Shown here one piece after another: positions 15,629 to 30,401 of a stretch of DNA of 64,000 nt. Where the stretch lies: IMG/VR virus record IMGVR_UViG_3300017917_002434, positions 62,001 through 126,000 of that record. One strand, written 5' to 3'. How positions within the stretch are numbered: the stretch's first letter is position 1; each line of letters begins with the position of its first letter. Made by a program: the position numbers and the translations under genes. Under the pieces are notes generated by a model, which was not told where the DNA came from, ran no database searches, and saw only the letters and a program-made list of their open reading frames with translations.

Positions 15629-16438
15629 ATGATAGATTACTATAAAACTTTAGGTGTAGATAGATCTGCTACATCGGACGATATTAAAAAAGCCTACAGA
15701 AAGTTGGCTATGAAGTATCATCCTGACCGCGGCGGTGATTCAAAAAAATTCCAAGAAATACAGGAAGCCTATGCTACACTAGGTGACGACGAAAAAAGAT
15801 TTCAATACGATAATCCCAATCAACGCCACTTCCATACCGGTAATATGGGAGATGATATATTTTCAACGTTCTTTGGGGGCGGTAGTCCGTTCGGTTTTGG
15901 ATTTCAACAACAGCAAAGAAATTCCAATATAGGTGCGACAGTTACCGTAACCTTAGAAGATATTCTAACTGGTAAGACTATAGACGCAGAAATCAGTTTT
16001 AGAAACGGACAAAAGAAACTAGTATCAATTAACATTCCGGCAGGTGTCGATGACAACATACAGATCAGATATCCAGGAATGGGCGATCAAAGTATTCCTA
16101 AATTTCCGGCCGGTGATTTAATCGTAACCGTTAGAGTATTACCTCACGCAGTATGGCGTAGAGAGCACAATAATCTAGTAGCGGAAAAAGAAATCAGCGT
16201 ATGGCAAGCATTGCTAGGATGCGATATTACGTTTGAAACTATTGAAAATAAAACTCTCAGCATAACGATTCCTCCGGGAACACAGCCCGGAACTGTGTTT
16301 AGTTGTAAAGGTGAAGGACTTCCCCATCCTAGGTCTGGCGTCAGAGGTGCTATACTGATTAAAGTTAAAGTCAATATACCAAGGAATCTTTCTGAAGAAT
16401 CTAAAAAAATGATAGAGGCATTAAGCAATGGAATTTAA
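15629..16438 (+). CDS. DnaJ-class (CbpA-like, no zinc finger) co-chaperone
   Basis: J-domain with HPD motif, G/F-rich region, C-terminal substrate-binding domain. Confidence 0.92.
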
Positions 16439-16919
16439 ATTAGGCCCCCATGAAAGCCTAGCACAGGTCAGCGACGACTGGAATTTCGCTGCTGATGGTA
16501 ACGCAGAAGAATTAGAAAAATCTATGATAGATTTTATGCTGAATAACAACGGCATAGGATTAGCAGCTAATCAAATAGGATTAACAAAAAATGTATTTGT
16601 GATTGGTAGTAAAAATATTCCCGGATATGAACCGATGGCAGTGTTTAATCCTAAAATCTTAGAGGTGAGTAAAGATACAGAGCTATTCAAAGAAGGATGT
16701 CTTAGCTATCCTGATCTTTGGTTAACTATTAAAAGACCAAAAGCTATTATAGCAGAATTTCAGAACAGCAAAGGAGATGTAGTCACTGCCGAGATGGATG
16801 GTCTTATTGCTAGATGCTTTCAACACGAATTCGACCATCTAAAGGGCATCTGTTTCGTTGACAGAGTGTCTCAGATGAAGTTACAATTAGCTATGAAAAA
16901 AATTAATAAGAGAAGATAA
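16428..16919 (+). CDS. def: Peptide deformylase
   Basis: [22 protein letters not shown] motifs. Confidence 0.93.
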
Positions 16920-16922
16920 TCA

Positions 16923-19262
16923 ATGCTAGAACCAAGTAGAAAACTCCAAGCAGTCTTTGAAAAAGCGATCGATATCGCACAGAGACTTGAACACGAATAC
17001 GTTACTATCGAACATTTAACTTTTTCTATCATCTTAGATGAAGAAACTTTCAATGGTCTTAGCCAAGCTGGTTTTGCTAGTGAATTCTTAAAAGTTAATT
17101 TAGAACACTTCCTCAAGACTAAATTAGATGATATCAGAACAGGTACGTCTAATCATAAACCTAAAAGAACAACATCTGTCGAACGTGTATTGAACAGAGC
17201 GTTTACTCAGGCATTGTTCAGTGGGAGACAAGTTATAGAAGTAGAAGATGTTCTTATCGCTATTATAGGTGAAAGAAAAAGCTTCAGTTTCTTTTACATG
17301 ACAAAAGCAGGAATTACCAAAGAAAAATTAATCGAGTATTTCCAAACTAAATTTGAAAACAGCGTCGAAGCAGACGAAAGCCCAAGACTTAATCATAATC
17401 AATTGGATAAAATTCTAAATCAGTTTTGTACTAACTTGAGCCTACTGGCCAAACAAAGAAAGATCGATCCTGTTATTGGCAGGGACGATGAATTGGAAAA
17501 AATACAACTTATTCTCGCTCGCAGATCTAAGAGTAATGTTCTGTTAGTTGGAGAACCCGGTGTAGGTAAGACTGCTATCGCGGAAGGCCTAGCACGTAAG
17601 ATATTTGAAAAGAAAGTTCCTAAATTCATATTAGATCACAGTGTTTACACACTAGATATTTCTGCTCTACTAGCAGGTAGCAAATATCGTGGTGATTTTG
17701 AAGAACGTATCAAAGCAGTCCTGACTGCCTTAGAAAAGAAAGGCAAAATCATCCTGTTCATCGATGAGGCTCATATGATGAACGGTGCTGGTGCTGCTAA
17801 CGGTTCAGCAAATGACCTAGCTAATATTCTAAAGCCTATGCTGACCAAAGGTACTATGAAAGTTATCGCTTCTACCACCTGGGAAGAATATCGCAAGCAC
17901 TTCGAAAAAGATCGTGCCCTAATGCGTCGATTCCAACGTGTTACAGTTGACGAACCTACGCCAGAGCTTACTGTTAAAATTGTTAAAGGTATAAGAAAGT
18001 ATTACGAACAGTTCCATACAGTAAAAATTACCGATGCGGCTATTGAACAGGCAGTTAAGATGAGCATCAAATATATGCCGGATAAGAAATTACCGGACAA
18101 GGCTATTGATATCATCGACTGTGCTGCGGCTCGTTATAAAATAAAAGATAATGACGCAGAAACCGCGGTTAGTATCGTTGACATTGAACAGATCATGTTC
18201 GAAGTTAGTAAAATGACTAACATGCCGTTCGAAACTGTCAGCGAAAAAGAATCTAAAAATCTTTCTGACCTAGAAAGCAATCTTAAAAATTCTGTGTTCG
18301 GACAAGAATCAGCGATTTCTAATCTGTTAGATAAGATTTTTGTAGCACAAGCAGGTATGAAAGTACCTAACAAGCCTATCGGATGCTTCTTATTCGTAGG
18401 ACCGACTGGCTGCGGTAAGACAGAAACAGCTAAACAGCTCAGCGATAAAATGGCTATGCCATTAGTTCGATTTGATATGAGTGAATATCAAGAGAAACAT
18501 AGCGTGGCACGGTTGATTGGTGCTCCTCCCGGCTACGTCGGCTTTGAAGATAATGCTGGTCAGCTGATTACTAAATTACAAGAAACTCCAAATTGCGTAC
18601 TGTTGTTGGACGAGATCGAAAAAGCACATCCAGACGTTAGTAACATCTTGCTACAGTTTATGGATAATGGATTCGTAACCGGTTCAAATGGTAAACAGGC
18701 AGACGGTCGTAACACTATTCTTATTATGACATCAAACTTAGGTGCCGCTGACAACGAAAGAAATAGTATTGGATTCGGAGATCTAGAAAAAGATGGGGAA
18801 GATGACAAGGCAGTTAAAAAATTCTTTGCTCCGGAATTTCGAAATCGTCTAGATGCTGTCGTAAAATTTGGCAGTTTATCTATGGATACTGTTAAAGTTA
18901 TCGTTGACAAGTTTATGCGTGACCTTAATCAACAAATCAAAGAGAAGAGAGTCGAAATAATCTTAACTGACGACTCGAGAGATTGGCTGGCAAAGCATGG
19001 CTATAATTCAAAATTAGGTGCTAGGCCGTTAAGTAGACTTATCGATAACGAAATTAAGTCTCCGATTAGTAGAAAAATACTGTTTGGAGAACTTAAGAAT
19101 GGAGGAAAAGTCTTCGTCAATGTGGTTGACAATAAGCTAGACTTTGTTGTAAAATTACAGGAAGAAGAGCTGGATAAATTTGAAAAACGTGCTTTCAAAC
19201 ACCACAGAAGGATTCAAGAGGGTGCTCCATTAATAAAAGATGATACAGTACAAGCCAACTAA
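16923..19262 (+). CDS. clpA: ClpA-like AAA+ unfoldase
   Basis: Clp N-domain, two AAA modules ([16 protein letters not shown]), no M-domain, IGF ClpP-docking loop. Confidence 0.9.
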
Positions 19263-19914: not shown

Positions 19915-19925
19915 TGCGATAAATA
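19915..19925 (+). promoter_or_regulatory. Late promoter TGCGATAAATA
   Basis: Repeated motif; heads the 19952-26895 array. Confidence 0.65.
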
Positions 19926-19951
19926 TAGTATCATCTTATAAGAGAGATACT

Positions 19952-20680
19952 ATGCGAGACATTCTTAATAAACTAACAGCGATCAGCGAAACTGCCCTTA
20001 GAGACAAGGAAGATCTAGACGCTAAACGCCAAGCATTGCAGGACTTAGAATCTGATCCTGTAGCTTCCGAAGACCCTGAAATTTCTAGTGCTATAGCACA
20101 ACGCAGAGCAGATCTAGAAAAAGAAGCTAAATCTAAAGGATTCACAGAGTCTTTAGAAATAGGAGACGGGTTTGGCATTAGCTTTTCTGAAGATTTTGAA
20201 ATTGCTACTGAGATTGTAGATATTTTAGAAGACGGAATCGTTATTGATTTAGATGATACAGCATTAGACATGCTAACCAAAGAAGGTTTAGTATTCTTAG
20301 AAGGCGAAATAGTAGAGGGCGAACAGCACGGTAACAGTAAAATTTACGATAAGTGCTGGAAAGGCCATAGAAAAGTCCCAGGTAAAGCAAGAGGCGAAAA
20401 AGGTTCTTGTAAAAAGATCGGTGAGGATAAGGAAGTCGACGAAGCCGAGTATCAAGGTAAAGAAGTTCCGCTAGGTAAGAAGTTACCGGGCGATGTAAAG
20501 AAATCAAAAGTATATGTACGCAAACCAAACGGTAAAGTTGTCAAAGTAAACTTTGGCGATAAGAAGATGCGTATTAAAAAATCAAATCCAGCACGTAGAA
20601 AATCTTTCCGTGCTAGACACAACTGTAAAAATCCAGGACCACGCTGGAAGGCACGTTACTGGTCATGTAGGAGCTGGTAA
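19952..20680 (+). CDS. Putative head-associated protein, acidic N-terminus and basic C-terminal domain
   Basis: C-terminal KVNFGD..RRKSFRARHNC..ARYWSC domain seen in large phages. Confidence 0.55.
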   Translation: MRDILNKLTAISETALRDKEDLDAKRQALQDLESDPVASEDPEISSAIAQRRADLEKEAKSKGFTESLEIGDGFGISFSEDFEIATEIVDILEDGIVIDLDDTALDMLTKEGLVFLEGEIVEGEQHGNSKIYDKCWKGHRKVPGKARGEKGSCKKIGEDKEVDEAEYQGKEVPLGKKLPGDVKKSKVYVRKPNGKVVKVNFGDKKMRIKKSNPARRKSFRARHNCKNPGPRWKARYWSCRSW

Positions 20681-21027
20681 TGAGATTATTTGAATTATTT
20701 GGTCCTGAGCCTGAAAATAAAGACGAAAGAGTAAATTCAGACATAGATTATGTATCTGATTTAAAATTTTTTATCGATAACGATAATGAATTAGTTAGTC
20801 ACAGTTTATTTCCTGCTATCAAGAAGCACAAAAAATTAGGCGGAGAGCCAGGACAATATCATGTCTACCTAGACGCTGTTAGATCCGCTATACCAAAATA
20901 CTGTGCCGAATACGATATGACCGATATCCAAGAAGATGTGTTTACCAATGAAGTCATTGAAGCAGTCTGTAAAAAATTTGCTGAAGAACAGTGTAAGTAT
21001 CTAGAACGCGGCGATTATGAGAATTAA
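20680..21027 (+). CDS. Hypothetical protein (MRLFELF N-terminus)
   Basis: Coupled ORF in the late array. Confidence 0.6.
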   Translation: MRLFELFGPEPENKDERVNSDIDYVSDLKFFIDNDNELVSHSLFPAIKKHKKLGGEPGQYHVYLDAVRSAIPKYCAEYDMTDIQEDVFTNEVIEAVCKKFAEEQCKYLERGDYEN

Positions 21028-21703
21028 TGAATTATTTGAAGACGCTGGTAAAACAGTAGCAGTCGCCTTTGGCAGACTGAATCCACCTACGATTGGTCAT
21101 GAGAAATTAGTCGAGGCCGTATTAAAACAAAAAGCCGACGATCATTTTTTATTTGTTTCTCAGACAACTAAGACTACAGGTAAAAATGATACGAGATTTA
21201 AAAATCCTATACCATTTAATATCAAGATACATTTTGTAGAAAAAGCATTTACTAATATCCCAATAGGAGATACATCTGTTAAAACAGTTATACAGATGAT
21301 GCAATATTTAGAAGACAAAGGATATGAAAATGTAATCTTCGTCTGCGGTAGTGATCGTGTTCCAGAGTTTACACAATTACTTAATGCTCAAAATGGCGTA
21401 GATTATAATATTAAAAATTTAAAGATCGAGTCTAGCGGTGCTAGAGATCCAGACGGCGAAGGAGCAGAAGGAATGAGTGGGACTAAGCTCAGGCAGGCAG
21501 CGATCGATAATGATCTAGAAAAATTTAGATCAGGTTTAGCATCAGGTCTACAGGCAGATGCTGAGGCAGTATTTGCAGCAGTTCGAGAAGGTTTACAACC
21601 GTGGATTACAGAAAGTGTTGTTGAAGGCTACGGTCGTTATTGGTGTTCTACAGATAAAAAATGGAAAACACGCAAAGGTCCTAAACAAAAGAGATCATCA
21701 TGA
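21017..21703 (+). CDS. HxGH-type nucleotidyltransferase (phage cytidyltransferase-like)
   Basis: FGRLNPPTIGH, NP, GSDR, MSGTKLR motifs. Confidence 0.8.
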   Translation: MRINELFEDAGKTVAVAFGRLNPPTIGHEKLVEAVLKQKADDHFLFVSQTTKTTGKNDTRFKNPIPFNIKIHFVEKAFTNIPIGDTSVKTVIQMMQYLEDKGYENVIFVCGSDRVPEFTQLLNAQNGVDYNIKNLKIESSGARDPDGEGAEGMSGTKLRQAAIDNDLEKFRSGLASGLQADAEAVFAAVREGLQPWITESVVEGYGRYWCSTDKKWKTRKGPKQKRSS

Positions 21704-23178
21704 GAGCAAAAGAATTTATCGTAAAGAAAAGAGATCCTAATTGGCAAACACTACAGGCCAAACGCACTAGCGGTGCTGCTGGGGCTCATAAAAATAAAAA
21801 GAAAGCTGCGAAGCAAGGTGATGTCAAACACAAAGCCAAATCTATGGCAGAGGGTTACAACCTAGGTGGTCTTGAGAAAGGCAAGTATTATCTCCACAGC
21901 ATTTACTCTGACAGTGAAATATTTACAGATCCCCGATCTGGCGATCCTATGTCATTTGACAGTTACGACGAAGCGGAAGATTTTCGCAGCGGTATGAGTG
22001 GTCGTGAACATGACGAATACCAAGTATCAGTATTCAATCAAGGGCAGTTGCTGCCTGTAGATGAAAGTGTATCAGAAGGTTCAGATTCTACCATTGCCAC
22101 CTTAGATGATGTTTTTAATGAACATGATTTTTATCGTTTAGAACACATCTGGCCCGCTTTAGAAGCAGGAGATAAAAAAGAAGCCCTAAGACAGATCAAT
22201 CATTATCTTCGCAAAGGTAAGAACCGTGCGTGGTGGGGAGACCTACAAGCCGTTGATATTAAAATAGATTCTAGCGATGTCGAGAACTCAATGGTGATGT
22301 GGAGTAAACCTATCAAGCAAGGCGTAGAGGAAGGTTTACTAACTGAAGATCCAGTAACTGCATTTGCAAGTAAAGCACATGACGAGTGGCGTCAAGGATG
22401 GATCAAACAAAACGGTGGCAAAAATCTTCCTAGAGTTAAGAAAAACAGCGACGGATCCGAGGGCGATATCAACGTTCCATTTAATAAACTTCACCCAGAC
22501 TGGCAACGAGAAAATTTGGCGGCGGGGAAGGCTGCTGAAGCCGCTGTGAAGTCGTATCCGAACGCACTTTCGGATCCCGACGAAATGGAAAAAGCTGCCG
22601 AATTTATTCATGTTGAATGGATGAAACGTAATCCCAAGGCTGATTATAATGCGGCTCAACACGTATCTTATGATCAACTGCCTGAGCCAGAAAAAGAAAA
22701 GGATCGTGTTCACGTTCGAACTATGGCTAAACTTATGGGTAAAACCGGAGGCTCTGTACAAGAATACGGAGATACTGCTAAAGGTCAGAAGATGTTGACT
22801 AAAGTTCATAAGCGAGCAGTTGATCGTATGATTAAAGCAGACGATAAGAGAGATGCTAAAGACGCTAAAAAGAATCAGCAAAGTGCTAATCGTGCTTGGG
22901 ATAGATTTGGCGAGAAAGAAAAGTATGGCGAAGATATAGAAATGGAAAGGGTAAGAGATCCCGAAGACTGGGACGAAGGCAACACCGAACCGCCAAACAA
23001 TATGGCAATCTATATTAACGGCAAGAAATGGAAAGTATTTCCAGGTCGTGGTCGATATGCCGACGACGAAAGAGAGATGAAACAGTTCTACGACTTAAAG
23101 GCATGGTGCCAAAGAAAATCAGAAGCAACAGGCAAGAAATGGGAAGTTTCTAGAACAGGCGAGCCTGCTACAGCATAA
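21700..23178 (+). CDS. Modular protein containing two RyR-like repeats
   Basis: AHDEWR...VPFNKL...REN and IHVEWM...VSYDQLPEPEKEKDR. Confidence 0.6.
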   Translation: MRAKEFIVKKRDPNWQTLQAKRTSGAAGAHKNKKKAAKQGDVKHKAKSMAEGYNLGGLEKGKYYLHSIYSDSEIFTDPRSGDPMSFDSYDEAEDFRSGMSGREHDEYQVSVFNQGQLLPVDESVSEGSDSTIATLDDVFNEHDFYRLEHIWPALEAGDKKEALRQINHYLRKGKNRAWWGDLQAVDIKIDSSDVENSMVMWSKPIKQGVEEGLLTEDPVTAFASKAHDEWRQGWIKQNGGKNLPRVKKNSDGSEGDINVPFNKLHPDWQRENLAAGKAAEAAVKSYPNALSDPDEMEKAAEFIHVEWMKRNPKADYNAAQHVSYDQLPEPEKEKDRVHVRTMAKLMGKTGGSVQEYGDTAKGQKMLTKVHKRAVDRMIKADDKRDAKDAKKNQQSANRAWDRFGEKEKYGEDIEMERVRDPEDWDEGNTEPPNNMAIYINGKKWKVFPGRGRYADDEREMKQFYDLKAWCQRKSEATGKKWEVSRTGEPATA

Positions 23179-23396
23179 TGGAACTATCAGACTTAAAACG
23201 CCTTGCTGGCATTAAGGAATTTAAAGGTTACCAACCCTATGGTGGTAGCAATATCAGCATCACTGGTACTGAAAAAAGACAATTAGAAAAGAAACACAAC
23301 ATTAGGCCCGGGACACCAGAATGGTTTAAGTTATGGTTTAGTTTGCCGTACCTAACAGGAGAAAAACCAGTAGGAGACGATCAATGGTCGAGATAA
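23178..23396 (+). CDS. Hypothetical protein
   Basis: Coupled ORF; LKRLAGI motif; [13 protein letters not shown]. Confidence 0.6.
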
Positions 23397-23710
23397 GCGA
23401 ATCAGCAAAAGCTAAAGTAATTGATTTATTAAATGAGGAAAATAATCCCGATTTAAAATTAAGAACATTTGTACAAGGTGGCGGCTGCTCTGGATTCCAA
23501 TACGGCTTTACTTTTGACGAAGAACAGAATGATGATGATTGGGAAATAAATCTAGACGGTAAGTGGAAGCTATTAGTAGATTCGATGAGCATGACCTATC
23601 TTAACGGAGCCCAGATCGACTACACCGATGATATTAATGGTAGTCAATTTACAATTAAGAATCCCAATGCTCAAACAACATGCGGATGCGGAAGTAGTTT
23701 TACAATATGA
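23384..23710 (+). CDS. erpA: A-type Fe-S carrier (ErpA/IscA family)
   Basis: [30 protein letters not shown]. Confidence 0.9.
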
Positions 23711-23781
23711 ACCAATATCCAGTATATCCAGAACAACAAGGCGAACAAGATCGCCCTTTAAATCCCTACGGACAACACTAA
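23707..23781 (+). CDS. Micro-ORF, 24 aa (not in ORF track)
   Basis: [24 protein letters not shown]; ATGA overlap upstream and TAATG overlap downstream. Confidence 0.5.
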
Positions 23782-25142
23782 TGAGAGCAAAAGAAATTCA
23801 GCCTAAGACATTAGTGGTCTTTGACATAGATGATACTCTGGTTCATACTCAGACCAAAGTTCATGTAGTCAAGGACGGTGAGGTAGTAAAGAGCTTAAAC
23901 AGTCACGACTTTACACATTACAAACTACAACCAGGTGAAAGTTTTGACTTTGAAGATTTTCGCAATGCTAGAGAGTTCTTTGAAAAATCTCGTCCTATCA
24001 TTCCTATGATGAATCAACTCAAGCGTGATATCGCTAGAGGAAACAAAGTTGTTATGGTCACTGCTCGTGCTGATTTCGATGACAAAGAATTGTTCTTAGA
24101 TACTTTCCGTAAGTACGGAGTAGACATTGATAAAGTACATGTCTATCGTGCGGGAAACAGTAAACAGGGAACCACAGAGGAACGTAAAAAAGCTATCATA
24201 AAAACTCTGTTAGATAAAGACAATTATAGCAAAGCTATCATGTATGATGATGCTAAACCTAATCTACATACATTTATAGAATTAAAAAATGACCATCCTA
24301 AGACACGCTTTTATGCTTGGCATGTAAGCCTAGAAGGAGAAGCCTCAGAATATATGAGAGAAGGAATGGTCAGCGAAAAGAGACGCCGACGCAAATTCAG
24401 AGGAGCAGCCTACGGTCCGGGACCATTCGGCGGGTATGGATATGCTACAGGATACAGCGGAGATGGTGGCGGTGCTGTGGGAGAAGCTAGTTACGCAGGT
24501 AACATCGGTGCTATGGAAGTGTTCAAGTTCATGCAGAAAGCAGGACCTGAAGAAAAAGAAATCCTAAAACAATTAATTGCTAGAAAGGATTATAGTCGTG
24601 CGTGGGCATTGATACAGGGGCTAACTGGTGTTAAACTTCAAGGTAAAGAATTTGAGGATCAACATCCTAACGAACAGCCCAGAGGTCCTGAAACTAAACC
24701 AACTATGCCCAAAGGTACAGTCAAAGTAGATGTATCCGATGTCTACGATTGGTACAAATTAGGTCAGCATATTAGTAATATGCGAGGACTGGGCAAACAC
24801 GATTTTGGACAAGGTCCGCCTAGCACTATTTTTTCATTCGGGGACGAAGAATTAGAACACAAATATATTCAGGCATTGCTAAAGACAGGATTAACAACGA
24901 CCGACATCGACCCTGCTGGTCACAAAAAACGCAAAGGACAAAAAGTAGATCCTACTTATAATGTTGAAAATTTTGCTGATGGTAAAGTAAAAGGCAAAAG
25001 CCGACCTGGTCGTGTAAAACGTGCCGGTGCTAGCTGTGACGGATCTGTAACTGACCTAAGAAAACGTGCTAAAAATTCATCAGGCGAAAAAGCCAAGATG
25101 TATCACTGGTGTGCTAATATGAAATCAGGACGCGGTAAATAA
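23781..25142 (+). CDS. Modular protein: HAD phosphatase domain plus short C-terminal modules
   Basis: VFDIDDTL, VTAR, YDD HAD motifs; start moved to MRAKEI (TAATG coupling). Confidence 0.75.
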   Translation: MRAKEIQPKTLVVFDIDDTLVHTQTKVHVVKDGEVVKSLNSHDFTHYKLQPGESFDFEDFRNAREFFEKSRPIIPMMNQLKRDIARGNKVVMVTARADFDDKELFLDTFRKYGVDIDKVHVYRAGNSKQGTTEERKKAIIKTLLDKDNYSKAIMYDDAKPNLHTFIELKNDHPKTRFYAWHVSLEGEASEYMREGMVSEKRRRRKFRGAAYGPGPFGGYGYATGYSGDGGGAVGEASYAGNIGAMEVFKFMQKAGPEEKEILKQLIARKDYSRAWALIQGLTGVKLQGKEFEDQHPNEQPRGPETKPTMPKGTVKVDVSDVYDWYKLGQHISNMRGLGKHDFGQGPPSTIFSFGDEELEHKYIQALLKTGLTTTDIDPAGHKKRKGQKVDPTYNVENFADGKVKGKSRPGRVKRAGASCDGSVTDLRKRAKNSSGEKAKMYHWCANMKSGRGK

Positions 25143-25145
25143 ATT

Positions 25146-25331
25146 ATGAAGATTGAAGAAATCACTGGACAGTTCAAATTCTTTGCTGCTAAAGTTAAAA
25201 TTAAGCAGAGCGGTTATAGCCAGATCATCGATACTACTATAACTGCTAAAAATCAAGAAATGGCTAGAAGGTTGATTAAGGCACAATATGGAAAAACTGC
25301 CCTAGTAAGTAACGTTAGAGAAATCAAATGA
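25146..25331 (+). CDS. Hypothetical protein (MKIEEI)
   Basis: TAAATA immediately upstream. Confidence 0.6.
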   Translation: MKIEEITGQFKFFAAKVKIKQSGYSQIIDTTITAKNQEMARRLIKAQYGKTALVSNVREIK

Positions 25332-25594
25332 AAATCGCAGAAATTATATTAGAGTCAGGTACTGAGGGCGGAACTACAACAGACATGATCGCTAAAGTAG
25401 TAAACCCGCAAGTTGCTATCGGTAACGATCGAGGAAACCGCAGCTACACTGGTAGTCCAGGAAAATCGGGTACTAAAGCACCCCGTGTGCCCAAGGCTGT
25501 ACAAGCTAAAAACCCAGACGGTACTGCTAAAAATGCCCTAGATATCGATACAAACATATTTGGTTCTGGGTCTGCTATCAAAAGATATAAATAA
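25328..25594 (+). CDS. Hypothetical protein (MKIAEIILE)
   Basis: ATGA-coupled. Confidence 0.6.
   Translation: MKIAEIILESGTEGGTTTDMIAKVVNPQVAIGNDRGNRSYTGSPGKSGTKAPRVPKAVQAKNPDGTAKNALDIDTNIFGSGSAIKRYK
25586..25593 (+). promoter_or_regulatory. T4-consensus late promoter TATAAATA
   Basis: Exact T4 late consensus, 5 nt before ATG 25599. Confidence 0.6.
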
Positions 25595-25598
25595 TACT

Positions 25599-25937
25599 AT
25601 GAAGAATAATGTGTTAAATGAAGACAACGATCTAGGTCCGCAGGACCATGAAGCTTCTATGGCTAGAGCAGAGCTTTACAAATCTGCTGAATATGCCATC
25701 AAAATATTTCATATGATCCAACCAGGAGACAATCTCGAAGGATGGGTAGCTGCTAAAATTACTAAAGCTGCTGATTATCTAGATTCTGTAGCACATTATA
25801 TGGAATATCAGAAAAAATTTGAAGAGCCTAAAATGGACGACAAAATGTCCTTAGACTCGGAACCAGAAGAATCACTGACTGCTGAAGTTGCCGAAAACCT
25901 CGCAGATCAATGGAAAAAATTTAAGACACAAGGATAA
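25599..25937 (+). CDS. Hypothetical head-associated protein
   Basis: Start moved to MKNNVLNE; LEGWV..KIT.A.DYL motif. Confidence 0.6.
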   Translation: MKNNVLNEDNDLGPQDHEASMARAELYKSAEYAIKIFHMIQPGDNLEGWVAAKITKAADYLDSVAHYMEYQKKFEEPKMDDKMSLDSEPEESLTAEVAENLADQWKKFKTQG

Positions 25938-25941
25938 GAAC

Positions 25942-26895
25942 ATGGATTTCAAATCTATACTAAGCAAACTAGACAATTTGTCTGCTCCTCCAAAGGGAGT
26001 CCAAGCACCAAAGCAAGCCGAACCTATTAGATTAGACGAAGGCACAGAATTACGTGTTCTAGCCGGTGTTACAGCATTAACTGAATCCGTTATTGCTGAA
26101 AAGAAATTAACAGCTGGTGAAAAGAAAAAGAAAGAAGAAGTTGTTAAGTCTATGAAAAAAGACAAAGAGGGCTTCAGCAAGCGTTATGGTAAACGTGGCG
26201 AAGAAGTTATGCACGCTACTGCTACTAAGATCGCTAAAAAGAAAGCTGAGAGTGTCAAGTCAAGCGACGAAACTATCGAAGAAGAAATGAAAGTCGGCGA
26301 TACAAAAAAGACACAACACGGCACTTTAACTAAAACAGCTACAGGTGTTAAGCATACAAGAGATCACAAACCAGAAGACGACGACGATTATGTACCTCCA
26401 AAGAAAGAAAAGAAAACTGCTATGACTGGAGCAGAGCGTCGAGAGCAGAAAGCTAAAGACAAAGAACAAGCTAAAGCTTCTAAAGAATACGAAAAGAAGA
26501 ATCCAGGTTCTGTAAAAAAATATGTTGATGGTAAGCTAGTCAAAGAAGCTAACAAACTAGATCCAGTCGGCAAAGAAGACGATGATGTCAACAATGATGG
26601 CAAGAAAGACAGTTCAGATGAGTATCTGAAGAAACGTAGAGCTGCTGTTTCTAAAGCAGTCGGTGGCAAGAAAGCAAATACTAAAGAGTCGCTATCATTC
26701 ATCACGGCATTGAAAGTAGTAAAAGAAAGTCGCGGCGAATTCCAGATCGATCCTATGGACAAGGAATTATGGGCATGGGCAGAACGTGTTGGTAAGACCA
26801 AGTTTACTGAATCAGTTCAAGCACAGGCATTTGCTGCTGCTACTTACGAAAGAATGGGCGGCGAGTGGAACTTACATAAAATTATCAAAGAATAA
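25942..26895 (+). CDS. Highly charged putative internal/scaffold-like head protein
   Basis: Start moved to MDFKSIL; K/E-rich with many hydrophobic-x-E sites. Confidence 0.55.
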   Translation: MDFKSILSKLDNLSAPPKGVQAPKQAEPIRLDEGTELRVLAGVTALTESVIAEKKLTAGEKKKKEEVVKSMKKDKEGFSKRYGKRGEEVMHATATKIAKKKAESVKSSDETIEEEMKVGDTKKTQHGTLTKTATGVKHTRDHKPEDDDDYVPPKKEKKTAMTGAERREQKAKDKEQAKASKEYEKKNPGSVKKYVDGKLVKEANKLDPVGKEDDDVNNDGKKDSSDEYLKKRRAAVSKAVGGKKANTKESLSFITALKVVKESRGEFQIDPMDKELWAWAERVGKTKFTESVQAQAFAAATYERMGGEWNLHKIIKE

Positions 26896-26912: not shown

Positions 26913-26943
26913 AAAAGCCGGTTAATCATTGACCGGCTTTTTT
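26913..26943 (+). terminator. Intrinsic terminator
   Basis: AAAAGCCGGT/ACCGGCTTTT stem followed by Ts. Confidence 0.8.
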
Positions 26944-26957
26944 ATTGACTATATAAT
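26929..26957 (+). promoter_or_regulatory. Sigma70 promoter TTGACC-N17-TATAAT
   Basis: Overlaps the 3' arm of the terminator; heads the replication block. Confidence 0.7.
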
Positions 26958-26982
26958 GTACATTATTAACCGGAGTTAACAA

Positions 26983-27243
26983 ATGGCAAAAATGTACGGC
27001 CCAGAAGAAAAGGCAAAGCTCGAAAGATTGATTACCGAAGGCGGCAATGTCCTTCGAGAGATTGAAGATCTACAAGAAGGTCTCAAAGAAACTGTAAAAG
27101 CTGTAGCCGAAGAATTACAAGTTAAACCTAGCATTATTAACAAAGCAATTAAAATCGCACATAAAGATAATTGGAAAGACCACGAACAAGAATGGGACGA
27201 AATCGAAATGATCTTAGGTGTAACCAAAAGATTACCTGAATGA
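26983..27243 (+). CDS. T4 DsbA-like dsDNA-binding protein
   Basis: Size and the pattern L..LI.E.......IE.....LKE.....AEEL......INKAIKIAHK. Confidence 0.6.
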   Translation: MAKMYGPEEKAKLERLITEGGNVLREIEDLQEGLKETVKAVAEELQVKPSIINKAIKIAHKDNWKDHEQEWDEIEMILGVTKRLPE

Positions 27244-27734: not shown

Positions 27735-30401
27735 TTGAGTTACGTTGACGCATTCTATAATCGCGATCAGGATACTATCCATATTGTCGAACGAGACGAT
27801 AAAGGAATTAGGCATTTTAAAGAATATCCTGCTCGACACATCTTTTACTTTCAAGACCCTAAAGGAAAATACACTAGTACTCACGGAGAACCGCTGAGCC
27901 GTGTAACCTGTAAAAATCTCAAAGATTTACATAAAGAACTTAAAATACATAGTGGCATGAAGCTCTACGAATCGGACATAAATCCGATTTATCGCTGTCT
28001 CGAAGACAATTATCTAAATCAAGATTCTCCTAAATTACAAGTAGCGTTTTTTGATATTGAAGTTGACTTTGATCCGGAACGTGGTTACGCATCGCCTGAA
28101 GATGCTTTTATGCCGATTACTGCTATAGCTATTCATTTACAATGGCTGAATACTCTAGTTTGTTTAGCCCTACCTCCAAAAACGCTAACTTTAGAAGAAG
28201 CCAAAAAACAAGTATCTGAATTTCCTAATACATATATCTTCGAAACAGAGGCTGAACTATTAGATAACTTCTTAAATCTCATCCAAGATGCTGATGTGTT
28301 AAGTGGTTGGAACTCAGAAGGCTTTGATATTCCTTACACAGTTAATCGTGTTACCAAAGTTCTCAGCAAAGATGACACAAGACGTTTCTGTTTGTGGGAT
28401 CAATATCCTAAGAAGCGTGAATACGAGAAATATGGTAGAACTTCTGTGACCTATGATCTCGTAGGTAGAGTACATCTAGATTTATTAGAAATCTATAGAA
28501 AATATACCTACGAAGAAAGACATTCGTATCGACTAGATGCTATCGCCGAATATGAATTAGGAGAAACTAAAACAGTCTATGAAGGTACATTAGATCAACT
28601 TTACAATAATGATTTCAAAAAGTTCATCGAATACAATAGACAAGACTGTGCTCTACTAGATAAACTAGACAATAAACTTAAATTCTTGGATCTCGCTAAT
28701 AAGATCGCACACGAAAATACAGTATTACTACAGACTACAATGGGTGCTGTAGCTGTTACAGAGCAGGCTATCATTAACGAGGCACATCGTAGAGGGATGA
28801 TAGTACCCAATCGGGTAAGAAGAGAACCTGGCTCTGAGCCAGCTGCTGGTGCTTATGTCGCTTATCCTAAGAAAGGCATCCACGAATGGATTGGTTCAGT
28901 TGATATTAACTCACTGTATCCTTCAGCAATTCGTGCCTTAAACATGGGACCAGAGACTATCGTAGGACAGTTGCGTCAAGACTACACTAAAAACTATATC
29001 GATCAAGAAATGGGCAAAGGAAAATCTTTCGCCGCTGCTTGGGAAGGTATATTTGGTAGTCTAGAATACGAATATGTGATGGAAAGAAACGTTGCCAAAG
29101 AAATTACTATCGACTGGGAAGGTGGGGGTAGTGATACACTCAGCGGTGCTCAGATCTATGATCTTATATTCGAAAACAATCAACCTTGGATGCTATCAGC
29201 AAACGGTACTATCTTTACCTACGAAAAAGAAGGTATTATTCCCGGACTGTTAAAGCGTTGGTATGCTGAACGTAAAGAGATGCAGGCCAAACTTAAAGAA
29301 TGTATCGCTGCTGGTAATAAAGTAGAAGAAGAATACTGGGACAAGCGACAGCTAGTTAAGAAGATTAATTTGAACAGTTTGTACGGTGCTATTCTTAATC
29401 CGGGTTGTAGGTTCTTTGATAATAGGATCGGTCAGAGTACTACACTCAGTGGTAGACAGATCGTCAAACATATGGCTAGTAAGATCAATGAAATAGCCAC
29501 AGGAGAATATGATTACAAAGGTAAAGCTGTAATCTACGGTGATACAGACTCATGTTATTTCTCAGCCTATCCTGTATTAAAGAAAGAAATTGAATCTGGA
29601 CAGTTGCCGTGGACCAAAGAAACTGTGGTTCAACTCTATGATCAGATCGCCGACGAAGTAAATGCCAGCTTTCCAAAAATGATGCAGGATAAGTTTCATT
29701 GTCCTAAGACTCGCGGAGAAGTTATTAAAGCAGGTAGAGAACTTGTTGCTTCAAAGGGGCTGTTTATTACCAAGAAGCGTTATGCTGTACTTTATTATGA
29801 TAAAGAAGGCAAACGTACAGATGTTAATGATAAACCTGGTAAAATCAAAGCCATGGGTCTTGATCTGAAACGTTCAGATACTCCTGTTGTAATTCAAGAC
29901 TTCCTTAGCAAAGTACTCGAGATGGTACTTAATGGTGTTCCTAGAGAAGAAGTTCTAGAATACATCACTGATTTCCGTACAGAGTTTAAGACTAGACCTG
30001 GTTGGGAGAAAGGTTCACCTAAACGTGCCAACAACATTACCGAGTATCAGGCTAAAGAAAAGAAACAAGGCAAAGCCAACATGCCCGGCCATGTTCGAGC
30101 TAGCTTAAACTGGAATACTCTGAAACGTATGCATGACGACAAGTACTCTATGGGGATCACTGACGGTGCTAAGGTTATTGTTTGTAAAGTCAAAGATAAT
30201 CCAATGGGCTATACTTCAGTGGCATACCCTGTTGACGAACTTAGATTGCCGCAATGGTTCAAAGATCTTCCGTTCGATGATTCCGAGATGGAGACTACAG
30301 TCATCGACGAAAAGCTAGAAAACCTTATTGGTGTTTTGGAATGGGACATCAGTTCAACAAGGTCAGATAACACATTCAGCAAATTGTTTGATTTTGAGTA
30401 A
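27735..30401 (+). CDS. Family B DNA polymerase (gp43-like) with 3'-5' exonuclease
   Basis: FDIEVD, GWNSEGFD, YNRQD, DINSLYPS, KINLNSLYG, YGDTDS, KKRY; TTG start. Confidence 0.96.
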   Translation: MSYVDAFYNRDQDTIHIVERDDKGIRHFKEYPARHIFYFQDPKGKYTSTHGEPLSRVTCKNLKDLHKELKIHSGMKLYESDINPIYRCLEDNYLNQDSPKLQVAFFDIEVDFDPERGYASPEDAFMPITAIAIHLQWLNTLVCLALPPKTLTLEEAKKQVSEFPNTYIFETEAELLDNFLNLIQDADVLSGWNSEGFDIPYTVNRVTKVLSKDDTRRFCLWDQYPKKREYEKYGRTSVTYDLVGRVHLDLLEIYRKYTYEERHSYRLDAIAEYELGETKTVYEGTLDQLYNNDFKKFIEYNRQDCALLDKLDNKLKFLDLANKIAHENTVLLQTTMGAVAVTEQAIINEAHRRGMIVPNRVRREPGSEPAAGAYVAYPKKGIHEWIGSVDINSLYPSAIRALNMGPETIVGQLRQDYTKNYIDQEMGKGKSFAAAWEGIFGSLEYEYVMERNVAKEITIDWEGGGSDTLSGAQIYDLIFENNQPWMLSANGTIFTYEKEGIIPGLLKRWYAERKEMQAKLKECIAAGNKVEEEYWDKRQLVKKINLNSLYGAILNPGCRFFDNRIGQSTTLSGRQIVKHMASKINEIATGEYDYKGKAVIYGDTDSCYFSAYPVLKKEIESGQLPWTKETVVQLYDQIADEVNASFPKMMQDKFHCPKTRGEVIKAGRELVASKGLFITKKRYAVLYYDKEGKRTDVNDKPGKIKAMGLDLKRSDTPVVIQDFLSKVLEMVLNGVPREEVLEYITDFRTEFKTRPGWEKGSPKRANNITEYQAKEKKQGKANMPGHVRASLNWNTLKRMHDDKYSMGITDGAKVIVCKVKDNPMGYTSVAYPVDELRLPQWFKDLPFDDSEMETTVIDEKLENLIGVLEWDISSTRSDNTFSKLFDFE

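Follow-up and report, generated by a model that had tools for sequence, protein, structure and literature searches.

In bacteriophage T4 the capsid-targeting sequence (CTS) MKTYQEFIAE is sufficient for targeting and is removed by the prohead protease gp21 (PMC8442874, PMC9026906). T4 gp23 and gp24 are also gp21 substrates according to the literature and record annotation. In marine relatives of T4, a cytidylyltransferase of cluster T4-GC190 was found in virions of cyanophage S-SM1 (PMC3037559), and the S-CREM2 cytidylyltransferase ORF154 and its neighbours ORF155, 156 and 160 are members of the virion proteome (PMC10665884). The literature searched describes T4-GC190 proteins as 'virion-associated' or 'structural' and connects them neither with a CTS nor with processing by a protease; it describes no CTS in cyanophages or marine T4-like phages, and contains no paper tying the virion-detected cyanophage proteins to one. 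Here we analyze a locus at positions 19952-26895 of a 64,000-nucleotide stretch of DNA (the window), which covers bases 62001-126000 of one linear 269,730-bp IMG/VR virus record (IMGVR_UViG_3300017917_002434; estimated completeness 76%). The locus comprises 11 co-directional genes, mostly coupled by overlapping stop and start codons, and many of their otherwise unrelated products begin with a similar short peptide, the leader. We consider it probable that the locus is a late operon that encodes about ten capsid-targeted internal (ejection) proteins, forming a T4-style capsid-targeting and internal-protein system.

The phage belongs to an abundant, uncultivated freshwater lineage of the T4 superfamily. 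Its DNA is found in pond, freshwater, riverine and aquaculture metagenomes, close relatives of its prohead protease number in the thousands, on contigs as long as 367 kb, and its DNA polymerase (window 27735-30401) shares no more than 51% identity with the enzymes of isolate phages such as Sinorhizobium phage Phosso, Atu_ph07 and Rak2-like phages.

A shared leader on unrelated proteins

The genes of the operon and its boundary elements are as follows (window coordinates; aa, amino acids; pI, isoelectric point).

19917..19931, + strand: putative late-promoter-like element cgATAAATAtagtat, with ATAAATA at 19919-19925, 33 nt 5' of the first ATG
Gene 1, 19952..20680, + strand: 242 aa; leader of class B, MRDILNKLTAISE (I-S-E13); kept in relatives
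Gene 2, 20680..21027, + strand: 115 aa, acidic; leader MRLFELF (in relatives MLLKEMF, MKLFELF)
Gene 3, 21017..21703, + strand: 228 aa; leader MRINELFE, HxGH-class nucleotidyltransferase (PPAT/NMNAT fold), basic tail ..GRYWCSTDKKWKTRKGPKQ..
Gene 4, 21700..23178, + strand: 492 aa; leader MRAKEFI; C-terminal module ..TGKKWEVSRTGEP
Gene 5, 23178..23396, + strand: 72 aa, basic; leader of its own class, site I-K-E14
Gene 6, 23384..23710, + strand: 108 aa; IscA/HesB-type Fe-S cluster protein, no leader
Gene 7, 23781..25142, + strand: 453 aa, basic; leader MRAKEI, HAD phosphatase (DIDDT), Gly-rich linker, basic tail ..NFADGKVKGKSRPGR..HWCANMKSG..
Gene 8, 25146..25331, + strand: 61 aa, pI 10.1; leader MKIEEI
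Gene 9, 25328..25594, + strand: 88 aa, pI 9.8; leader MKIAEIILE, then S
Gene 10, 25599..25937, + strand: 112 aa, acidic; N-terminus MKNNVLNE (L-N-E8)
Gene 11, 25942..26895, + strand: 317 aa, basic, Lys/Glu-rich; leader of class C, MDFKSILSKLD
26914..26943, + strand: intrinsic terminator, a GC-rich hairpin followed by U6

An earlier sequence-only reading of this DNA had quoted ten N-termini, and all are present, at starts 19952, 20680, 21017, 21700, 23178, 23781, 25146, 25328, 25599 and 25942; those at 23781, 25599 and 25942 are internal to longer open reading frames (ORFs) and are backed by a codon-model gene caller and by orthologues. Its description of the proteins as unrelated to each other holds as well, with no significant mutual similarity among the 11 beyond the first ~10 residues. 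The consensus that it proposed, M-[RK]-x-x-E-[ILF], is carried by six of the 11 locus genes and, among the 277 genes called in the rest of the 269.7-kb genome, by five (Fisher p = 2.6e-7), which bears out the genome-wide enrichment that it had put forward as a check. As a description of all ten N-termini the consensus is too simple: they comprise one dominant class and three others, MRD[IL][IL]xKL..[IV]xE, M[ED]LxxLKRLAGIxE and MDFKS[IL][IL]xK[IL], each kept in relatives.

Seventy related loci were gathered from IMG/VR with gene 3 as anchor, 22 of which keep both flanking anchors (a ClpA-like ATPase and the 'FYNKWLYK' gene upstream, a DsbA-like gene and the DNA polymerase downstream). In these 22 relatives the slightly relaxed pattern M-[RK]-x-x-[EDQ]-[ILFV] is carried by 89 of the 227 genes inside the locus and by none of the 350 flanking genes. 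Gene content is variable, with modules fused, split and swapped, and the leader persists, with the extended consensus M-[RK]-[ALI]-x-[ED]-[FLMI]-[FIL]-x-E. Single-linkage clustering of the leader proteins did not separate families, because shared tail modules chain the proteins together.

A position-specific scoring matrix (PSSM) built from the relatives only places seven of the locus genes among the top 11 of the 288 genes of this genome, with a clear score gap beneath. Genes from outside the locus also reach the top group, among them one of 82 aa that directly follows the portal gene, in the position of gp67/68, a late gene of 380 aa close to the head module, the gene of a basic 113-aa protein next to the tail sheath and a gene pair at genome positions 262210-263253, one of which encodes a Pol-beta-type nucleotidyltransferase (NTase). 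A further gene of this genome begins with MKTLKDYLAE, the exact ten-residue T4 form, and matches a PHROG annotated as virion structural protein. Several T4 N-termini resemble the gene 3 leader MRINELFE, namely those of gp24 (MAKINELLRE) and Alt (MELITELFDE), and also gp22 (MLKEQLIAE).

The proposal that the locus starts at a late promoter and ends at a terminator agrees with both boundary elements. Sequences of the form gcgATAAATA lie 23-41 nt upstream of large structural genes across the genome, and the ATAAATA element is kept at equal distance in at least 23 relatives, in which the surrounding spacers are divergent. The terminator hairpin has a folding energy of -17.3 kcal/mol (z -4.28), and 0 of 200 shuffled sequences fold equally well.

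Head machinery, a predicted cleavage site and a mimic of the capsid protein

The genome encodes the head machinery with which a T4-type leader would act, in the order portal, small core gene, protease, scaffold and major capsid protein (MCP). The prohead protease (Peptidase_S77, gp21 family, PF03420, 7.5e-24; genome 168587-169216) is 32% identical to T4 gp21 in alignment, and the Gp23-family MCP (PF07068, 5e-81; genome 170335-171519) has a predicted N-terminal propeptide. Between them lies the scaffold gene.

Genome 169232-170323: T4-type scaffold protein, with the leader-like N-terminus MLDIVKQLFE

In the relatives, a hydrophobic-x-Glu motif ([ILFVM]-x-E) ending at residue 7-10 is present in 62% of the leader genes as against 8% of other genes, a test that is only partly independent, as the PSSM that defines the leader spans positions 8 and 9. 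The residue after the leader Glu is usually A, S, N or T. In the window, 8 of the 11 locus genes have hydrophobic-x-Glu, and genes 4, 7 and 11 lack one at the expected place. Residues predicted to follow the leader Glu are SGTEGGTTTDMIAK in gene 9, DNDLGPQDHEASMAR in gene 10 and DAGK followed by TVAVAFGR in gene 3.

The context of this Glu is repeated in the capsid protein. In a MAFFT alignment, T4 gp23 (..FLTE|AEIGG) and gp24 (..LLRE|STT) align with the MCP of this phage (..YLSE|SATAGATS); the bars mark the cut positions taken for gp23 and gp24 and the corresponding place in the MCP. Members of the gene-9 family in relatives L011-L061 carry the leader followed by E|(S/T)ATAGATS(A/S)GNIAT, a near-copy of the predicted mature N-terminus of the MCP. 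The gene-9 protein of relative L020 and the MCP of the phage analyzed here share ESATAGATSAGN(I/V)AT across the predicted site (14/17 identical, E = 2e-6), and in L014, where the gene-9 family is fused behind another module, the junction retains ..SIKE|TATAGATS. The window's own copy of gene 9 has diverged (ESGTEGGTTTD). This copy of the MCP context suggests that the leader Glu is a processing site and is the strongest internal evidence for it; judging from the likeness, gene-9 proteins may also occupy the binding sites of the capsid N-arm.

The leader as an add-on, and cyanophage virion proteins

The product of gene 3 is a nucleotidyltransferase (phrog_3041 'cytidyltransferase', 4e-50; top Foldseek matches PPAT/NMNAT) with an intact TIGH motif and tblastn matches in 555 phage records. 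All 21 of 21 orthologues have [LM]-F-E at positions 6-8. In the AlphaFold2 model of gene 3 (pLDDT 80), the Rossmann fold starts at residue 12, and the 11 residues before it have no structure. The homologue in the Rak2-like phage CBB starts directly at the fold, without a leader, and the homologue in HTVC008M starts with MKTLKELL. Neither CBB_73 nor a cytidyltransferase is named in the main text of the CBB paper.

Gene 3 and S-CREM2 ORF154 share 32% identity, the leader-bearing Pol-beta NTase encoded elsewhere in this genome is 36% identical to S-CREM2 ORF156 (5e-45), and relative L024 has the tail module of S-CREM2 ORF160 joined to its cytidylyltransferase. A six-frame scan of S-CREM2 (OR473000) with the pattern start-[KR]-x-[FLYI]-x-x-[FLYM]-[LIMFV]-x-E, which the T4 CTS also fits, returned exactly four ORFs, all of them among the 52 virion-detected proteins of 221.

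ORF6: SAM hydrolase, MKDFDSFLEE
ORF13: small protein, MKDLHSFLTE
ORF14: APH-like kinase, VKRFDAFLTE
ORF154: cytidylyltransferase, MKNFSSFLTE

The pattern is absent from the non-virion neighbours of the matching ORFs, and the leader rule selects exactly the enzymes that proteomics had unexpectedly found in these virions. It is likely that a leader system of this kind explains the 'virion-associated enzymes' of cyanophages. The Cas9-like ORF12 of S-CREM2, also detected in virions, contains ..LRFASFMAE some 20 residues after the annotated start, a hint that this start may be mis-called.

Proposed mechanism and points against it

We infer from this comparative evidence that the locus proteins are packaged and cleaved; injection and anti-defence roles are extrapolated from T4. 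The leader would be a short amphipathic peptide of 8-14 residues with the dominant form M-[RK]-x-x-[ED]-[FLI]-[FIL]-x-E, binding the protein to the scaffolding core during prohead assembly. A gp21-type protease would then cut after Glu at sites whose P3 residue is hydrophobic, and the leader would exit the head, leaving the mature and mostly basic proteins, several of them with basic Cys/Trp tails, in the head with the DNA. The cargo would, with less certainty, enter the host at infection, where its enzymes (the PPAT/NMNAT-type nucleotidyltransferase, the HAD phosphatase and, from elsewhere in the genome, the Pol-beta NTase) could act before phage gene expression.

The sequence-only reading had likewise proposed a leader of the T4 CTS type. 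That proposal is strongly supported by the protease, scaffold and MCP, the hydrophobic-x-Glu motif, the copy of the MCP context, the position of the leader outside the fold and the homologues of two families, which mass spectrometry detected in cyanophage virions and which bear leaders of the T4 form, and it does not extend to gene 6, which lacks a leader.

Several observations weigh against this account. Genes 4 and 7 (MRAKEF/MRAKEI) offer only A-K-E5, with no hydrophobic-x-Glu at 7-10, gene 11 has no early Glu, and one member of the operon (the IscA-like gene 6) is without a leader. A complex prediction for the prohead protease with gene 9 scored 0.07, which is no evidence either way. Late timing is read from the promoter motif only, and the phage is uncultivated and known from sequence alone, in a record that is 76% complete. 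As for the cyanophage evidence, the S-CREM2 authors caution that abundant proteins may co-purify with virions (PMC10665884), and our S-CREM2 pattern was written after some of the N-termini were known, making it a corroboration and no blind test.

Alternative explanations

The leader proteins could instead be accessories of the prohead core or scaffold that shape assembly and are then degraded and expelled like T4 gp22, gp67 and gp68, and would not be cargo. The gene beside the portal in the gp67/68 position bears the same leader, the N-terminus of the scaffold is itself leader-like, gene 5 mimics the C-terminus of the scaffold and the gene-9 family the N-arm of the MCP, and several members (genes 2 and 10) are acidic, all as such a role would have it. 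However, the intact catalytic motifs of genes 3 (TIGH) and 7 (DIDDT) would be pointless in a scaffold, homologues are found in mature cyanophage virions, and 7 of the 11 proteins are basic, as are the T4 internal proteins; we regard the accessory role as unlikely. The wider proposal that the locus is a modular cargo-building kit is unlikely too, if not quite to the same degree. It holds that recombination joins interchangeable N-terminal addresses, which may comprise the CTS-type leader, the mimic of the scaffold C-terminus and that of the capsid N-arm, to enzymes and to basic Cys/Trp tails that bind DNA, and so programs head position and exit time, that cleavage at Glu5 exposes an F/L N-degron timing the destruction of the cargo in the host, and that the virion-associated enzymes of marine cyanophages (SAM hydrolase, kinase, cytidylyltransferase) are injected first-strike effectors.

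The shared N-terminus might also serve some other process, as an element of expression or translation initiation, as a stability tag or degron, or as a recognition tag for the adjacent DnaJ/ClpA-like module. Codon 2 is strongly AGA/AAA, the module of DnaJ, deformylase and ClpA/B-like genes lies immediately upstream and is kept in relatives, and residue 6 (F/L/M/I) would be of N-degron type if the protein were cut after Glu5. The preference at codon 2 is equally strong in leaderless genes, though, codon use at leader positions 5-9 is normal, and over 179 distinct leader DNA sequences Glu5 is encoded by GAA and GAG in genome-wide proportions. Since the Glu5 codons are normal, the codon-2 bias is general and the DNA upstream is not conserved between locus genes, the constraint acts on the peptide. 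Highly expressed late structural genes lack the leader, and a tag of this sort would leave both the copy of the MCP cleavage site and the cyanophage virion data unexplained; we judge this explanation quite unlikely. It is highly improbable that the leaders are alike only as a remnant without present function, left by common descent or by recombination, such as a duplicated 5' cassette. In line with a remnant, recombination is frequent at the locus, a hotspot where modules are shuffled, yet it is the peptide pattern alone that is conserved, over the same 179 leader sequences and down to ~40% protein identity, upstream DNA is unconserved between the genes, and the flanking genes of the relatives are free of the pattern. 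Capsid targeting of the leader proteins is the reading that we prefer.

Candidate signals of other kinds were rejected: an mRNA or translation signal on the codon tests, a repeated DNA cassette on the differing DNA upstream of the genes, and a secretion signal peptide on the composition of the leaders, which are charged and acidic, not hydrophobic.

Residue 6 of class-A leaders is almost always F, L, M or I; it is a speculation that a cut after the invariant Glu5 would expose an N-degron-type residue.

Individual genes and surroundings of the locus

The product of gene 1 has an acidic middle and a basic Cys/Trp tail (..RRKSFRARHNC..RYWSCRSW) that matches phrog_7595 (1e-8) and the C-terminus of Pelagibacter phage HTVC008M gp131, and that shows a depth spike in other metagenomes. 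Gene 2 had no match in family (Pfam, PHROG) searches. Gene 4 contains an RyR-domain-like region (~aa 214-349), recognized from its structural likeness to viral proteins with RyR domains (TM by row 0.84 and 0.60); Pfam reported no RyR domain at E 0.01, and tblastn against isolate phages gave no match for this gene.

The gene 5 family is kept in ~30 relatives. At the N-terminus it is similar to the last residues of the scaffold protein of this phage (..IRKLAGLKV) and to the end of a 580-aa protein (..SRIKELSGL; genome 234986-236728); the C-terminus of T4 gp68 reads ..LKRRKALGLS. From the resemblance, the scaffold-end-like N-terminus of gene 5 may be a second kind of capsid-binding address. Gene 6 (PF01521, 6e-18; phrog_17776, 2e-42) keeps its position in relatives and probably belongs to the operon without being cargo.

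Gene 7 matches PF03767 (2e-4) and phrog_415 (polynucleotide kinase/phosphatase, 5e-11). In relative L014 its tail is a standalone 64-aa gene with a leader of its own, MRAHEFILE|NFADGK. A structure atlas search with this basic tail matched only anonymous small viral proteins, and PDB sequence searches with genes 3 and 7 gave nothing usable. Fragments identical (100%) to gene 10 are present in two metatranscriptome libraries and may be DNA carry-over; the fragments in these libraries are scattered and too sparse for operon structure or timing. Gene 11 matches phrog_4359, phrog_38880 and phrog_764 (each at ~1e-7) and, at the DNA level, S-CAM9, P-RSM4 and S-TIM4, through modules common to cyanophage and pelagiphage cluster proteins; its ..DNDG..DSSDEYLKKRR.. 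module is also found in HTVC008M gp133.

Seven of the 11 locus proteins have a pI of 8.4-10.1. Short basic Cys/Trp C-terminal modules lie at window 20500-20680, 21620-21703 and 24960-25142. Modules of this type recur in the relatives on different proteins and as stand-alone, leader-bearing mini-genes, and from their composition a DNA-binding role is plausible.

Directly 5' of the operon (window 15629-19262) is a proteostasis module encoding DnaJ (J domain and C-terminal domain), a peptide deformylase and a ClpA/ClpB-like double-AAA+ ATPase (779 aa), and its arrangement next to the cargo locus is kept in relatives. On the 3' side, the terminator overlaps in its 3' half with a near-consensus promoter of the sigma70 type (TTGACC-17-TATAAT), which precedes an 86-aa DsbA-like (T4 late-transcription-related) gene (window 26929-27243). 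Elsewhere in the genome, a pair of paralogues upstream of the portal (869 and 830 aa; genome 159905-165006) have matching N-termini, and two tail-fibre-like paralogues (1899 and 2111 aa; genome 175172-187342) share the N-terminus M..LGRISGP.LKANL.

Significance and comparison with known systems

If the preferred reading is correct, T4 capsid targeting extends from the T-even coliphages to an abundant uncultivated freshwater lineage of T4-like phages and, by homology, to marine cyanophages and pelagiphages. The leader with its hydrophobic-x-Glu end would then be a simple sequence rule to predict which accessory proteins go into the head and reach the host along with the DNA. It would make the nucleotidyltransferase, the phosphatase and the Pol-beta NTase (in cyanophages, the SAM hydrolase and the kinase) candidate first-minute takeover or anti-defence factors, and the leaders themselves would be natural tags with which to load foreign proteins into the capsids of non-coli T4-like phages.

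The closest parallel is the T4 CTS with its carriers IPI, IPII, IPIII and Alt and the gp24 propeptide, in which a short N-terminal leader is likewise borne by otherwise unrelated, mostly basic proteins (MKTYQEFIAE in T4; typically MRAxEFIxE or MRxxELFE here). Hydrophobic-x-Glu, the type of site cut by gp21, closes the T4 leader and usually the leader here too, homologues of gp21, gp22 and gp23 are encoded, and a late-promoter-like element precedes the operon. An enzyme cargo of the locus parallels Alt and, as at T-even internal protein loci, gene content is hypervariable and the leader conserved. The dominant leader is one residue shorter than that of T4 and is accompanied by three extra leader classes, and about ten genes stand in one operon, whereas the T4 ip genes are scattered. 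The predicted cargo includes a nucleotidyltransferase, an HAD phosphatase and an RyR-domain-like protein; basic Cys/Trp C-terminal modules recur and shuffle, and one family copies the MCP N-arm.

The T4-GC190 cluster of T4-like cyanophages and HTVC008M includes homologues of gene 3 (phrog_3041, 4e-50; 32-37% identity), shares tail and linker modules with the locus through the neighbouring genes HTVC008M gp131 and gp133 and S-CAM9 gp095, and has leader-like N-termini (MKNFSSFLTE, MKTLKELL, MKTFKQF.., MLSFKSF..). Members of the cluster have been detected in virions by mass spectrometry. It differs in gene content and in the leader, which is of the ten-residue T4 form.

In PhiKZ and SPN3US, a homologous protease cuts many head-internal ejection proteins after Glu, and propeptides of CTS length are present on some of them. 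Their propeptides are mostly >100 residues with an A/S-x-E motif, the head has no T4-type scaffold and no short leader array is known, whereas the leaders described here have 8-14 residues and a T4-type scaffold is present. The cargo-loading peptides of encapsulins are similar in that a short terminal peptide suffices to load unrelated enzymes into an HK97-fold shell; unlike the leaders, they are usually C-terminal and uncleaved and involve neither DNA nor injection, and the present locus is not a member of that group. The kind of system is therefore a known one, and what is new is the lineage, an array of this size with so many enzymes, the likely explanation of the cyanophage virion enzymes, the additional classes of leader and the mimic of the capsid arm.

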